From Selaginella moellendorffii (lineage: Eukaryota; Plantae; Lycopodiophyta), in assembly GCF_000143415.4 (NCBI RefSeq), contig NW_003314261.1:2553266-2617265 (forward strand): 64,000 bases of DNA. Reading direction: 5' to 3'. The notes beneath the pieces were generated by a model. That model did no database searches and had not been told where the DNA came from. It saw nothing but the letters and a program-made list of their open reading frames with translations. The position numbers and the translations under genes were made by a program. Positions 36,796 through 42,210 of this stretch are shown piece after piece (positions within the stretch are counted from its first letter, which is position 1; every line of letters starts with the position of its first letter).

Positions 36796-37622
36796 ATGGA
36801 GCTTGTGGCAGCGCCACAGGCGGTGCCGCTCGCCAGGATCTCCGGCGCTGCGTCCACTTCGTCGGCATTGAGCAAGGGATTGAGCGTGAGAAGCCCCGCG
36901 ACGACGGCCTTCTTTGGATGCAAGCTCCAATCGCTGCCACTGCAGTTAGCAGGGCGCCAAGCGCGATCGCTACAGGTGAGATTTAGCTAGAGAATGTGGG
37001 GATTTGTGTCCATCTAGAGTGGATTCTCGTGATTCACGAAAATTTCGAGCTATATCACTACTAATGACCTTTAAATCGCAGGTATGCGCGAGTAAGAAGA
37101 CCTTCTCATCCTTCGATGAGCTCCTGCAAAAGTCGGATCGTCCCGTGCTCGTCGACTTCTACGCAACATGGTATGTGGTAATGAATCCCTCGCAAGTTTC
37201 TTCGTGCCTAAAGATTGATTTAGTTGCCGTTGTCTTCTGTGAAAGGTGTGGTCCGTGCCAGTTCATGGTTCCCATCCTTGGTGAAGTCCAAACAGCAATG
37301 AAGGATGAGATCACTGTGGTAAGCCCATTCTTCTCTCTTTTTGTTCGATTGGTTGCCAAGCTTCTCATTTCCAGGTAAAAATCGATTCGGAGAAATACTC
37401 GGACTTGGCGAGCAAGTACAGCATCGAGGCTCTTCCAACATTCATTCTCTTCAAGAACGGCTCGCCTGTGGATCGTTTCGTAAGTTCTAAGCAAAAAGAG
37501 AAAACTTCTTTCAACTTCATTGCTAAAATCCATGGGTTCTTTTGCAGGAAGGTGCTCTACCGGCAGCAAAGCTGATGGAAAGGATCCGCGGGGTCTTAAG
37601 CTCTTGCAAGGCAGGCGTCTAA
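36796..37622 (+). CDS. Plastid thioredoxin, y-type, multi-exon
   Basis: Transit peptide, then KTFSSFDELLQKSDRPVLVDFYATW|CGPCQFMVPIL...VVKIDSEKY...IEALPTFILFKNG...DRFEGAL. Confidence 0.93.
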
Positions 37623-38146
37623 AACGAAAGTTCGTGCCTGGTATCCATTTTTTAAAGGATTCAATCTTATAGAAGTTTGCTTGGCTTCTCCTTCAGAAAC
37701 AATAAAATAAAATGCAACAGTCGGATCGCGAGAAATTCCTATCCTGTTTTTCTGACTTCTGAGCACTGGTTTTTATTGTGATCCAGGATCGTTAGCTTCG
37801 TCGAATCGGGCTTTTTGTCCATAATGACCGGAAATTGTCAAGTGAGATCATTCCATTTTGTGCGGAGAAAAATGTCGACTGACGATTGGTGGCTTGTAGA
37901 TTTGGACGTAACGGAATCGATCAGTTTGATGATGGCTGTATCTCTCCCGGAAATCAGCCCGTTGTAGTAATCCGGCAAGTATAAACTTATCTTCTTGGAT
38001 CGTCGCTTTCAAATTGTCTTCTCAAAACGACCAGCTTGTTCCTGTTCTTTTCAGCCTCGGTAGCACTCAAAAGGTAGAACTTTCTTTCACCCCGACTTCT
38101 TTGCTCACTCGGATGGATCTTTTTCTTTTTCCATGCAGCTTCCAAG

Positions 38147-39751
38147 ATGGCTTCTACAGCAGTTCTTGCGCTCCTGACAGCGACGCTACTCATCGTCTCG
38201 TGCACGGCTCAAGCTCCGGTAGAATCTCCGGCCGAAAGTCCAGAACAAGGGCCCGTCTTGCCAGTCTCTCCAGAGAGCGCTCCGGCGGAGCCCCCGGTTC
38301 CTTCTCCACAAATCTTTGGCATCCCACAGTCGCCGTCGCCGTCTCCGTCTCCATCAGAACTCCCGCCGCCGTCTTCAGCTCCCGTCTTTCTGCCTCCATC
38401 ACCATCACCACTTGAAGCTTTGTCTCCAACTGAAGCTTTGGTTCCAGCTCCAGCTCCATCTCCAGCCTCCCCGCCACCTTTACGTGTTCCAACAAGCTTC
38501 TGCGCACGCTCGGTCCTCCGGAAGACATGTCCGAATCCTCCGACGTTCGACTACATCCAGCTCCCGGACTACGCCGGCAAGTGGTACGAGATTGGAGCCA
38601 CCGCCACCTCCAAGCTGCTGCTCGAGGCCGGGACTATCTGCAACCAGGCCGTGTACGCCGTCCCCAACACCTCGAGCTTCGCCCAAGCGCCAAACATGTC
38701 CGTCACCAACGTCGGGCTTCACGTTGCCGGCCCGCTCACATCTCTCGGCGTCCAGCAGGTTGCGGCCGCCGCTGGAAGCGCCTGCTCGGGCGCTCGAACC
38801 ATCTGCGACCGAGTCGCCAACGACAGCCACACCACCAGAGCAGCAGTGGAGCTCGCGTCCGTGGCCGCGGCCATCGAGCAAGGGAACTTCGCCGCCGAGC
38901 TGCTGGAGCTCCAAGACCAGATCTTCTCGGCCATCGGAGAAATGGAGGCGACGCTCGACCTCTTCTCGCCGTGCATGGAGAGCATCCAGCGTCTCGACGG
39001 CGACCTGAGCCAGGCGGAGATCTTCGCCAACGCCACCACCCCGGAGCAGCGCAACGCGACGCTGCTGGCGCAGGGAGCCCGCCTCGAGGCTCTGGATGGC
39101 CTCCTGGATCAAGCCAACGCGCTGGTGGACTCGCTGCGTCAGTCGGTCCACAAGATGACGCAGTGCACGCCCAAGATCGTCAACATCTCGGCGCAGCTCC
39201 TCTTCGTCGGGGACCTCGAGTCGAGCGTCCGGCTCACGTCGGCTTCCACGGACCTGAGCACCACCGGCGACGCCATCCTCTCCCAGGTCCTGGCGATGCG
39301 TCTCACGCTGAAAGGCATCGCGGCGGCTCGCGGCCTCATCGATCTCGCCATCAGCACCGCATCGCCCAACACCACCGCGCCGAGCTTCGACACCTCTGCC
39401 GGCTTTGCCATCCAGAACGTCACCTCTCCCGGCAAGCTCAAGCTCCAGCTCGCGCCATCCATCGCCGCGCCGGTGCCGCCACCCGCGGCTCCATACTGGG
39501 TGCTATCACTGCGAGGGCGGGCAATGCAGGGATACCGGGCCTCGCTGGTTTACTCGTGCTCGCAGAACAAGGTGACGGGAACGATCCACCAGGGGATGTT
39601 CATCCTTTCCCGGACTCCCAGCCTTCCGCAGAAGATCGTCGGTGAGCTGCTCCAGCTCTCGGCCGCTTTTGGCATCAACAACGACTGTGACGATCCGTTC
39701 CTCTACACTGTCCATCACGGCAAGACGTGCGCCATGCCACCCTCGGAGTGA
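38147..39751 (+). CDS. Secreted ApoD-like lipocalin with Pro-rich N-terminus and a large helical insertion
   Basis: 534 aa intronless: signal peptide; SP/AP-rich linker; CPNPP...YAGKWYEIG...CNQAVY; ~220 aa Ala/Leu/Gln-rich insert; PGKLKL...APYWVL...LVYSC...ILSRTPSL. Confidence 0.75.
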   Translation: MASTAVLALLTATLLIVSCTAQAPVESPAESPEQGPVLPVSPESAPAEPPVPSPQIFGIPQSPSPSPSPSELPPPSSAPVFLPPSPSPLEALSPTEALVPAPAPSPASPPPLRVPTSFCARSVLRKTCPNPPTFDYIQLPDYAGKWYEIGATATSKLLLEAGTICNQAVYAVPNTSSFAQAPNMSVTNVGLHVAGPLTSLGVQQVAAAAGSACSGARTICDRVANDSHTTRAAVELASVAAAIEQGNFAAELLELQDQIFSAIGEMEATLDLFSPCMESIQRLDGDLSQAEIFANATTPEQRNATLLAQGARLEALDGLLDQANALVDSLRQSVHKMTQCTPKIVNISAQLLFVGDLESSVRLTSASTDLSTTGDAILSQVLAMRLTLKGIAAARGLIDLAISTASPNTTAPSFDTSAGFAIQNVTSPGKLKLQLAPSIAAPVPPPAAPYWVLSLRGRAMQGYRASLVYSCSQNKVTGTIHQGMFILSRTPSLPQKIVGELLQLSAAFGINNDCDDPFLYTVHHGKTCAMPPSE

Positions 39752-40250
39752 GAAGAGAGGATCGATCTTTTTTATTCCATTTTCGTTGCTTGGAAATGTC
39801 TGTCTGCTTGTAGCTAGAAACCCTGCTAAAAACGATGCTCCCAGCTCTCTGTTTGCGCAAGCACAAAAATAACGAAATAAGACCATGCTTAAATCTGGCT
39901 CAAAGCACGTTAAATCTGAATCAAACCTCCGTACAGTGCGACACTGAAGTGAGCCACTATATTCTCTTTGAGCACAATAGTCTTTTCTACACAATATTTA
40001 TATTGAGAAAAGTCTAGAAATATTCTATTTTAATTAAAATAAAAATAAAAACTGAATATTCCCATTGTAAAATGTAACATTCTGAAGTCCAAGTGTACAG
40101 TTAAGTCTCTTCTTATGCCGTGTTCAAGCTCATTTCTTAAGAACCAGCCAGTCAAAGTCATGTGTGAATACTCTCCAACTCTGACTGATGCTTGGTGGCC
40201 TTTATATGATCACAAGCACCATTCATTTATTTTATTGTTGTTGCATTCTA

Positions 40251-42210
40251 ATGGAGCTATGTAGGCTATTTGCTTTTGTCCTGCTTGTTGTCAAACTTGT
40301 TTTTCATGGAGATGCTGAAGATTCAGAGTTGGAAGCACTCTTGAGCTTTAAAATTCTGTGGATGATCCTCTGGTGGCACTGAATAACTGGAAGGCAGGCA
40401 CAGACGTTTGCCAATGGATTGGTGTAAGTTGTTCCTCGGTAGGCGGCATCACTGGCATACAGCTTGATTCTCTGTCACTTTGGGGCCTTCTTCCATTTTC
40501 TACCATCCAAGCCCTGCCTCAACTACGCACCTTGAGTGCTTCTGGGAACAACTTCACTGCGATCAAAATATCACCGCAGAAATGCTCTTTGGAGGTCCTC
40601 AATTTGTCAAGCAACGATTTCACTAGTCATTTTCTAGATATTCTTTTGGTTACTTACAAAGACATCAGGCACTTGAACCTCTCACACAACAAGCTAAGAA
40701 AAATTTCGCTGAAGGGAACAATCGGGCATGTTATGGTTTCGGTTGATTTATCTCACAACAGAATCAGTGGCTCGATACCTGCTTCCATTTTCACATTGTG
40801 TAAGAGTCTATCAGACAATCACGTATTTGGACCATTCCTCTCGGTATTTGCCAATCGAAGTTTAGCTACGGTTTTCAAGTCTCTTAAAGTTCTCCAGGCC
40901 GACCACAACAACTTTATAGGTGAACTCCCTACAGTTCCTCCAAGTCTTAAGGCTCTAGACCTGAGCTGCAACTTGTTCAGCACTGGCAACCCAAACATCT
41001 GCCCTGCAAGGTCCTCACTTAAGTCTTTGCTGCTGGTATATAACAGGTTGCATGGTCGGGTTCTGAACTCAGCCATGAACTGTGTGGAAGTGCTTGGTAT
41101 CAGCATCAATTCTCTAGCAGGGCCCATGTGCAGCAGACTTCCGAAGCTTCAACATCTTCTTCTTTGGGGGAACAATCTTGAAGGCAGCATACCCGCTACA
41201 ATCAGCAATTGCAGTGAGCTGGTGACACTAAATCTCAGTTTTAACAATCTCACAGGCGTCATTCCTCAGCAAATATCTAGGCTGAAGAAACTCTGCTTGC
41301 TGTTTCTGAGCAACAACATGATATCTGGAGCAATCCCGGGATCTATTGGAAGTATGCTGAGCCTTCGATCTCTTTTACTGGGTCACAACAAGCTTCAGGA
41401 TAGCCTACCAAGCGAGCTGAGGAACAGCAACGGTCTGTTTTTAGTGAACGACAATCAGTTGACAGGACAAATTCCAAGCTGGATCGGCCGCTCATCAGAA
41501 GTGGAAATAACCGAAATAACCTTCCCGTTTCTGATGGTGTTTGCAATCAACATAGAGGCATCCATCTGCAAAGCTAATGAGGAGGTTTTCATACTGCAGG
41601 GGATCCGCTTGGATGACTTTGAGCACCTTCCATTTGCAACCAGATGCCGAAGTTGGCACCTCCTGGTTCCAACTTAACAACATATACTCAGGTAAACAGT
41701 CCTTTGGCTATTGATCTCTCGCACAACAGCTTCACCGGAACAATCCCAGAGGAATTCGGTGGCATGCGAGACTTAAATGTGCTAAATCTCGCACACAACT
41801 TACTTACAGGGGCCATCCCTTCCACAATTGGAAACCTCAAGAACCTGGAGTGGCTAGATTTATCACAGAACTGGCTTGAATCACACATCCCGGACTCGCT
41901 TGGCAACCTCACCTTCCTGAAATACTTAAACATCTCGCACAACAAGATTCTCGGAAGGGTTCCACAGAGTGCTCAGCTTGCATTATTCCCAGTGAGCAGC
42001 TATGAAGGAAACCCAGGCCTTTGTGGCTTCCCCCTTGGAGAGTGTGCTGGTTTGCATAATCCTTTTCATGATGATCACACAGATGAAGACGATGATGACG
42101 GTCATAGTGATCAAACGATTCTGGCTGCCATTGTTGGTGGTGGTGTTTCATGCATCCTGTGGACCTCTTCAGTAAGAGATGGGAGGCACTGCTTAAACTT
42201 TTTATTATAA
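40251..42210 (+). pseudogene. LRR receptor-like protein, frameshifted
   Basis: Signal peptide/LRRNT (ELEALLSFK; DDPLVALNNW...C.WIGVSC), plant LRRs (L.L..N.L.G.IP), SSYEGNPGLCG, acidic juxtamembrane region and TM. Spread over three frames. Confidence 0.85.

Follow-up and report, generated by a model that had tools for sequence, protein, structure and literature searches.

We examined a 64,000-nucleotide stretch of nuclear DNA from the lycophyte Selaginella moellendorffii (contig NW_003314261.1, positions 2,553,266 to 2,617,265, hereafter the window) and describe here a gene within it, the open reading frame (ORF) at 38147..39751 on the plus strand, which encodes 534 residues plus a stop codon. 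By its fold, by the first and third structurally conserved regions (SCR1 and SCR3) and by the cysteines it shares with apolipoprotein D (ApoD) the product is a lipocalin, and its architecture, in which a whole domain is nested within the barrel, is new. Our reading, to which we give a probability of roughly 0.75, is that this is a secreted, disulfide-bonded lipocalin of the ApoD/Lazarillo/bilin-binding protein type, a member of an old streptophyte family with a rigid four-helix bundle of ~210 residues set into the hairpin between strands C and D, which would serve as a carrier of a hydrophobic ligand in the apoplast. The ORF had been singled out by a reading of the sequence alone, made without database searches (the sequence-only reading), and all the motifs which that reading quoted were found at the places it gave. 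The features of the gene product, all on the plus strand, are as follows.

38147..39751, plus strand: coding sequence (CDS), one exon, 534 residues and stop (ORF, exact public protein copy, contiguous RNA contigs).
38147..38212, plus strand: putative signal peptide, residues 1-22, with a hydrophobic core and an AQA/P cleavage motif (inspection, hydropathy).
38213..38500, plus strand: Pro-rich N-terminal extension, residues 23-118, resembling arabinogalactan proteins (AGPs) and hydroxyproline-rich glycoproteins (HRGPs) in composition.
38501..38722, plus strand: N-terminal part of the lipocalin, residues 119-192, with C119, CPNPP (C128), a 3-10 turn and predicted strands A-C; aligns to ApoD 5-61.
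38723..39382, plus strand: predicted four-helix bundle in the C-D loop, residues 193-412 (model of the whole protein and model of the insert alone).
39383..39748, plus strand: C-terminal part of the lipocalin, residues 413-534, with predicted strands D-H, α-helix and strand I, and C471, C514 and C528; aligns to ApoD 63-150 and sandercyanin 84-153.

The two halves of the lipocalin are recognizable at the sequence level. The motifs CPNPP (C128), GKWYEIG (G144), CNQAVY (C165) and APYWVL (residues 448-453) are followed in the C-terminal half by LVYSC (C471), ILSRTP (R489) and a terminal cysteine, C528. A phmmer search of the PDB matched human ApoD with both halves (residues 127-171 and 424-505) and sandercyanin (its residues 84-153) with residues 432-513. 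When a profile of 19 family members was used instead, ApoD was the best solved relative (E=2.7e-19), again in two stretches, ApoD residues 5-61 corresponding to profile positions 39-104 and residues 63-150 to positions 307-396. As the ApoD stretches break at residues 61/63, the extra domain is located exactly at the turn of the C-D β-hairpin, in agreement with the earlier suggestion that it interrupts a barrel loop. Below ApoD the profile matched Escherichia coli Blc (6e-12) and Arabidopsis TIL (6.7e-9), 16 of the 19 family members matched curated lipocalin models at E<=0.01 (best 1.2e-12), and a search of NCBIfam returned weak Blc matches alone. SCR1, a G-x-W on strand A after a 3-10 helix, is present as G144-K-W146-Y-E-I and aligns to GRWYEI of ApoD, with G144 invariant in the family and Y147 and E148 nearly so. 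SCR3, the arginine of strand H, is R489 of ILSRTP, which is nearly invariant and aligns to ILARN of ApoD. Over the SCR2 region, 'ATDYENYALVYSC' of ApoD was aligned with 'SLRGRAMQGYRASLVYSC', within which Y463, V468, Y469 and C471 are conserved.

Residues 112-534 were modeled with AlphaFold2 from a 19-sequence alignment, and all structural statements here refer to this predicted model, which had a mean predicted local distance difference test score (pLDDT) of 89.2 and a predicted template modeling score (pTM) of 0.88. Its secondary structure elements are, in order:

Residues 144-152: strand A.
Residues 164-171: strand B.
Residues 183-192: strand C.
Residues 196-242: bundle helix 1 (segments 196-222 and 228-242).
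Residues 247-289: bundle helix 2.
Residues 299-353: bundle helix 3 (segments 299-338 and 340-353).
Residues 357-404: bundle helix 4.
Residues 413-423: strand D.
Residues 430-435: strand E.
Residues 448-456: strand F.
Residues 465-473: strand G.
Residues 480-488: strand H.
Residues 495-507: C-terminal α-helix.
Residues 518-520: strand I.

In the model, strands A-C and D-H together with the C-terminal helix close into a complete eight-stranded lipocalin calyx, which is what the sequence-only reading expected of the two halves. Foldseek with the whole model aligned ApoD and sandercyanin over ~405 columns (TM normalized by target 0.82-0.83), and a chordate ApoD cluster of the ESM-Atlas superposed over 167 residues at 1.9 Å. 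By VIA-align the nearest solved structures were sandercyanin (Z 22.4; 165/169 residues, 2.0 Å) and ApoD (Z 21.5; 164/166 residues, 2.3 Å, 27% identity), followed by Arabidopsis TIL (8wb2), Blc and crustacyanin (Z 20.1 each), bilin-binding protein (Z 19.1) and the lipocalin domain of VDE (Z 16.5). The superpositions on sandercyanin and ApoD span model residues 13-421. The standard lipocalin topology has the A-B, C-D, E-F and G-H loops at the open end of the barrel, and the bundle would therefore exit and re-enter the barrel at the end by which ligands enter.

The likeness to ApoD, Lazarillo, sandercyanin and bilin-binding protein thus extends from the signal peptide through the CPxPP start, the GxWYEI of strand A, LVYSC and the strand-H arginine to the positions of Cys8, Cys41, Cys114 and Cys165, and the barrel and helix superpose at Z 21-22 and about 2 Å. 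The differences are that the bundle here replaces a two-residue C-D turn, that there are four extra conserved cysteines, and that the ApoD group consists of secreted animal lipocalins whereas the members of the nested-bundle family are from plants and algae, those of Selaginella and Taxus chinensis (P0087) having an AGP-like extension in addition.

Eight cysteine columns are conserved across the family, from its Zygnematophyceae to its gymnosperms (C128, C165, C471, C528, C119, C220, C213, and C514). C128, C165, and C471 align to Cys8, Cys41, and Cys114 of ApoD, and C528, seven residues from the C-terminus, resembles Cys165, bearing out the four-cysteine parallel with ApoD that had been pointed out previously; these columns are occupied by cysteine in 17-18 of the 19 members. 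The disulfides of ApoD pair Cys8 with Cys114 and Cys41 with Cys165, and we infer the same bonds here, C128-C471 and C165-C528, from the alignment. C119 and C220 are nearly invariant across the family, while C213 and C514 are both present in 11 members, both missing from five and discordant in one. These patterns suggest two extra disulfides, C119-C220 and C213-C514, by which the bundle is probably held fast to the barrel, and a fixed orientation of barrel and bundle is consistent with the pTM of the model.

Export from the cell is indicated by the hydrophobic segment at the N-terminus (Kyte-Doolittle 12-residue maximum of 2.84 at residue 6), which has an equivalent in every full-length member of the family, as would be expected of the signal peptide that the sequence-only reading had proposed. 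A hydrophobic C-terminus was found in no member, so none is of the type anchored by glycosylphosphatidylinositol (GPI). Most members have 8-10 cysteines and 3-8 N-glycosylation sequons, and the Selaginella protein is probably both N- and O-glycosylated.

Several observations weigh against the reading of a secreted ApoD-type lipocalin with a stapled bundle. Pfam Lipocalin_2 matched the C-terminal half of the Selaginella protein alone, at 19.1-20.1 bits relative to a cut-off of 24 bits, a shortfall we attribute to the domain being split. The TDY that kernel lipocalins have in SCR2 is not retained, in which the protein also departs from the ApoD group. The signal peptide was called by eye and from hydropathy. 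The case for the two extra disulfides is made by conservation and by co-occurrence, the latter being clustered phylogenetically and so reflecting few independent events. Lastly, no specific relatives of the insert were found with Foldseek, VIA, the Atlas or a profile search of the PDB.

The insert itself is predicted to be a four-helix bundle whether it is modeled within the protein or alone. Folded alone from a 17-sequence alignment (pLDDT 92.4, pTM 0.86), it consisted of two straight and two kinked helices, all four long. In the whole-protein model its N and C ends are brought together at strands C and D, and the modeled boundaries (38723-39382) agree with the ~38720-39390 estimated from sequence. 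That estimate had been accompanied by the suggestion of a helical bundle or a coiled coil; the former is supported by both models, and the coiled coil was rejected since the models give an intramolecular bundle. The insert is rich in Ala, Leu, Ser and Thr and 17% of its residues are charged, with three Lys, two His, and neither Trp nor Tyr. Its highest 19-residue hydropathy, 1.34, lies within helix 4, and Q289, in an LSQ motif of the loop between helices 2 and 3, is nearly invariant in the family. An apolipophorin-like bundle, of the apoLp-III or apoE N-terminal type, in which class-A amphipathic helices are rich in Lys, Arg and Glu, was also considered and rejected on the basis of this composition (17% charged, only three Lys); the ApoLp-III Pfam model matched one homolog only, weakly (E=0.0075), and no such protein was among the top fold matches of the insert.

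Those fold matches were led by long four-helix bundles of designed origin (6z0c, Z 17.3; 198/199 residues, 2.4 Å), followed by tail regions of toxins of the ClyA family (AhlB, Z 13.5), the sensor TorS and a plant pectin methylesterase inhibitor (PMEI, Z 12.0), and by the calibration of the tool helical bundles commonly give a Z below about 13. Foldseek, which returned an ApoD-type barrel for the full protein, had no match for the excised insert at E<=0.001; ESM-Atlas searches by feature and by shape gave nothing specific, generic bundles at most; and the profile of the insert retrieved only coiled-coil noise from the PDB, so that none of these searches (PDB profile, Foldseek, Atlas) identified a natural homolog. 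The designed maquettes 6z0c and 8d9p share the up-down-up-down arrangement and helices of ~45 residues, but the match to them, as to the ClyA tails and PMEI, is at the level of fold only (6-14% identity), and the insert does not have their cofactor-binding His pattern. We conclude that the insert is, as modeled, a generic intramolecular four-helix bundle.

The same list of folds can be taken to mean that the bundle is the active part of the protein, either a defensive, pore-forming module that inserts into membranes like those of ClyA, Hbl and Nhe or an inhibitor of wall enzymes like PMEI and the invertase inhibitors, with the lipocalin serving as a targeting or lipid-sensing head. The toxins recur (AhlB Z 13.5, HblL1 11.9, Hbl-B 11.3, MakA 10.9, NheA 10.5), as do the inhibitors (PMEI at 2.4 Å; invertase inhibitor Z 10.6), the composition of the bundle is rich in Ser, Thr, Gln and Ala, and there were weak profile matches to MakE and Nhe L1 (E about 2.5e-4, although no single stretch passes) and, for the Marchantia protein, to NheB (E=0.012). 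Yet nearly all of these Z scores are in the range common for helical bundles and stand below those of designed proteins, the PMEI match covers only 121 residues, and the hydrophobic head or β-tongue of the ClyA family was not found in a domain whose hydropathy peaks at 1.34. The barrel is moreover better conserved than the bundle (33-37% versus 19% mean pairwise identity), and we regard an active bundle as quite unlikely.

That the insert is part of the mature message was established from public sequencing data. The stretch is present in twenty public sequencing runs, and contigs from four of these, belonging to four studies, were aligned to positions 37400-40400. That the runs were of RNA was initially a guess, but we take them to be spliced cDNA because their contigs are without three genomic segments bounded by GT..AG (37480-37547, 37842-37899 and 38072-38136). 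Contigs spanning 38137-39580, 38179-39857 and 38321-39812, which jointly include the whole CDS with the insert, contain no joint, and in the spliced mRNA the ATG at 38147 follows an in-frame stop; the CDS is therefore a single exon and the introns are confined to the 5′ untranslated region (UTR). The gene had been described as intronless and GC-rich, and of this description the intronless CDS and its GC richness (63.7%) stand, whereas the gene as a whole has two introns:

37842..37899, plus strand: 5′-UTR intron 1, 58 nucleotides, GT..AG (joint 37841/37900, three runs).
38072..38136, plus strand: 5′-UTR intron 2, 65 nucleotides, GT..AG, ending 10 nucleotides before the ATG (joint 38071/38137, three runs).
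39752..39893, plus strand: 3′ UTR, its end approximate (RNA contigs stop at 39812-39893).

In the region aligned, no contig of the four runs extended past 39925. The ORF is accordingly an expressed gene of S. moellendorffii. Its exact 534-residue product is in the public protein collection, along with a second copy of the same 90% cluster (EFJ32066/XP_002967467/D8R8H4, named "hypothetical protein SELMODRAFT_408493"), which is 98% identical (525/534) and encoded on a different scaffold, as fits an allele in an assembly of two haplotypes.

These data bear directly on the possibility that the insert is an intron or otherwise non-coding and that the true protein is an ordinary contiguous lipocalin. 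It is the case that in ordinary lipocalins of ~170-250 residues the stretches matching the two halves are just 10-25 residues apart, and contigs prove presence rather than absence, such that a rare spliced isoform is conceivable. Against this, the insert was retained, in four studies, by contigs from which three adjacent GT..AG introns had been removed; it is an open frame in which the contig variants were synonymous at seven sites and non-synonymous at two (16 and eight in the CDS overall, four of the eight replacements falling within the first 120 residues, with one in the signal peptide, a further two in the Pro-rich region and the last at residue 120 itself); it is collinear and conserved in length in ~20 homologs, among them the single-exon genes of Diphasiastrum and Marchantia; and it folds alone with a pLDDT of 92. 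We therefore consider a non-coding insert highly improbable.

Homologs were sought exhaustively with HMMER, using residues 120-534 as the query and a library of 50%-identity representatives, and 20 of the 81 matched clusters were looked up for their taxon. The 81 proteins found at E<=1e-3 fell into two groups: ordinary lipocalins of ~170-250 residues matching residues ~120-190 and ~420-530, and ~20 proteins of roughly 400-480 residues collinear with the full query, insert included. The survey of seedless plants and other lineages that had been called for thus placed collinear members in the following taxa.

Lycophyte: Diphasiastrum complanatum.
Liverworts: Marchantia paleacea, Calypogeia fissa and Riccia fluitans.
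Fern: Ceratopteris richardii.
Gymnosperms: Ginkgo biloba and Taxus chinensis.
Zygnematophyceae: Mesotaenium endlicherianum and Closterium spp.
Uncertain source: the transcriptome of Leptophrys vorax, an alga-eating amoeba, for which an origin from the prey is possible but unproven.

No angiosperm or moss member was among the 20 clusters looked up out of 81 from this library. The collinear proteins are annotated as "hypothetical" or have automatic lipocalin-domain names. Literature searches on the accession, the locus tag and the subject, with most subscription journals outside their reach, found no account of the family or of its architecture. Within that scope the claim of a new architecture is upheld as to its being undescribed, but it is no novelty of Selaginella. 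The insert is 196-235 residues long in 17 of the 19 members aligned, and mean pairwise identity is 37% in the N-terminal part, 19% in the insert and 33% in the C-terminal part. In some gene models from algae, one protein has the lipocalin with its bundle two or three times in tandem (P0015 of Closterium sp. NIES-65, 1321 residues; P0058 of Closterium sp. Naga37s-1, 750 residues; P0067, 868 residues), and these are perhaps polyproteins or the result of fusing tandem genes.

In a maximum likelihood tree the two named Zygnematophyceae (97/93) are sister to a land-plant clade (98/94) within which the fern and gymnosperm groups are found; homologs from Logan, IMG and MGnify were placed by the tree alone. 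Diphasiastrum (1314 nucleotides, 437 residues) and Marchantia paleacea (1311 nucleotides, 436 residues) likewise have the CDS in one exon. Because of the spread of the family, a tree that follows the species tree, and the shared single-exon CDS, we conclude from these comparisons that the nested-bundle lipocalin was inherited vertically. The sequence-only reading had held that the origin of the gene merited testing. A foreign origin, whether by contamination or by horizontal transfer with an animal, microbial or viral donor, would be in keeping with the intronless CDS, with the high GC content at third codon positions (GC3) of the barrel and bundle (0.80-0.87 versus 0.50 in the neighboring leucine-rich-repeat (LRR) ORF), with a best PDB match to ApoD ahead of plant TIL, and with the viral and fungal lipocalin clusters listed by the Atlas feature search, all of which scored below 0.9. 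Such an origin is hardly credible for a gene that has two spliceosomal introns in its 5′ UTR, is on both haplotypes, has homologs with the same insert across the streptophytes, with Zygnematophyceae sister to land plants (98/94), and has a single-exon CDS as a family trait.

The Pro-rich extension between signal peptide and barrel (residues 23-118) is 34% Pro and 66% Pro, Ala, Ser and Thr (PAST), with 13 SP, five AP and three VP dipeptides and no Tyr or Lys, and so has the composition by which chimeric AGPs and HRGPs are recognized (PAST >50%, clustered SP/AP/VP, signal peptide). It had been called an AGP-like stalk. The AGP-like composition is evident, but there is no membrane anchor at either end of the protein and the region lies between signal peptide and barrel, making it a free N-terminal extension and not a stalk; a GPI-anchored or membrane stalk was rejected on these grounds. 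Most homologs have no such extension, but that of Taxus chinensis has one of 113 residues rich in Pro, Ser and Thr at the same place (P0087 residues 24-136; 31% Pro, 65% PAST), and by composition, at least, AGP-like extensions recur in the family. Within the single exon there is a sharp break in codon composition, GC3 being 0.40 at 38213-38500 and 0.80-0.87 at 38501-39748 (0.75 for the whole CDS; 0.44 in the transcript of one homolog), which hints that the Pro-rich extension was added later from a different sequence. A contig of one run (X11) is without 38249-38320, 72 nucleotides with GG..GC ends whose loss removes residues 35-58 (GPVLPVSPESAPAEPPVPSPQIFG) in frame, and this is more likely to be a length allele of the Pro-rich region than an intron.

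Plant lipocalins have been classed as TIL and CHL, together with the lipocalin-like VDE and ZEP, and TILs are without a targeting peptide (PMC2527315). The Selaginella protein is, like TIL and CHL, a true lipocalin of the Blc/ApoD group, as shown by the profile match to TIL (E=6.7e-9) and the superposition on Arabidopsis TIL. TILs, which go by the label "plant ApoD ortholog", have a contiguous barrel and are not known to have ApoD-type disulfides. At ~180-190 residues they differ from the protein described here, which has a signal-peptide-like N-terminus, a 220-residue insert and eight conserved cysteines and is nearer to ApoD, while CHL/LCNP is plastid-targeted and the nested-bundle family appears to be secreted. 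VDE, a protein of the thylakoid lumen, likewise adds domains to a plant lipocalin fold, but its Cys-rich N-terminal and Glu-rich C-terminal domains flank the barrel rather than being nested in a loop, and no specific sequence relationship to VDE was detectable. A further analogy is with xylogens, which combine a non-specific lipid transfer protein (nsLTP) domain with AGP modules and are GPI-anchored. Both are secreted small-lipid-binding domains, putatively so in our case, joined to Pro/Ala/Ser/Thr-rich glycomodules, although the nsLTP domain is all-α and not a β-barrel, there is no C-terminal hydrophobic signal here, and the extension is lineage-specific.

How might such a protein work? In the apoplast or cell wall, the ApoD-type calyx would bind a small hydrophobic ligand such as a lipid, sterol, tetrapyrrole or carotenoid. 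Through the disulfides, bundle helix 1 would be fastened both to the N-terminal segment and to the C-terminal segment that follows the α-helix, making barrel and bundle one rigid body, in which the bundle may act as a docking or spacer surface and the proximal loop between helices 2 and 3, with Q289 of the LSQ motif, as a gate beside the mouth of the calyx. The AGP-like extension would add wall-matrix glycomodules and embed the Selaginella protein in the wall, and that of Taxus would be either independent or ancient. The ligands of the nearest structures are biliverdin, astaxanthin, haem, progesterone or arachidonate, and fatty acids. A rival reading makes the protein not a lipid carrier but a lipocalin of the cell exterior or vacuole that binds a pigment (bilin, haem or carotenoid) or is an enzyme (VDE-like), given that biliverdin-binding sandercyanin heads the structural matches, crustacyanin, haem-bound Arabidopsis TIL and bilin-binding protein are close behind, and the VDE lipocalin domain is also matched. 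The fold does not, however, give the ligand class, ApoD with its progesterone or arachidonate is equally close, no catalytic motif was identified, and the Cys-rich and Glu-rich flanking domains of VDE are absent, leading us to rate a pigment-binding or enzymatic role as rather unlikely.

The surroundings of the gene include a thioredoxin-like gene upstream (37004-37730, plus strand), in which an intron splits the WCGPC motif (VLVDFYATW and CGPCQ) and whose final intron (37480-37547) was spliced out, with deep coverage, in each of the four runs. One contig of run X1 links the 3′ end of this gene to the lipocalin mRNA via both UTR introns, so the two transcription units overlap or there is read-through. 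Downstream, an ORF at 40358-41677 on the plus strand is LRR receptor-like and probably one exon of a larger LRR receptor-like kinase or receptor-like protein gene; 39925-40400 was without RNA contigs in the four runs. Two long ORFs in other frames of the GC-rich CDS (38527-39645, +2 frame, 372 residues; 38480-39151, minus strand, 223 residues) are Arg/Gly/Pro-rich and look like artefacts of composition rather than genes.

Taken more broadly, and at somewhat short of even odds, the family may represent a third, overlooked class of true lipocalins in streptophytes, secreted, with a stapled bundle, of an origin before land plants in view of its presence in Zygnematophyceae, apparently lost in flowering plants, and acting on hydrophobic molecules as an extracellular carrier or gatekeeper in the wall. 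If this is true, the classification of plant lipocalins would gain a secreted, ApoD-type, disulfide-bonded class, which the lack of angiosperms among the 20 clusters looked up would explain having been overlooked, and the cysteine framework of ApoD would not be an animal invention. The family would also be an example from nature of an entire domain accommodated by a single open-end loop, one of the four that anticalin engineering makes use of. Should it prove to be a wall lipid carrier, it would bear, speculatively, on how precursors of the cuticle and spore wall transit the aqueous apoplast of non-flowering plants.

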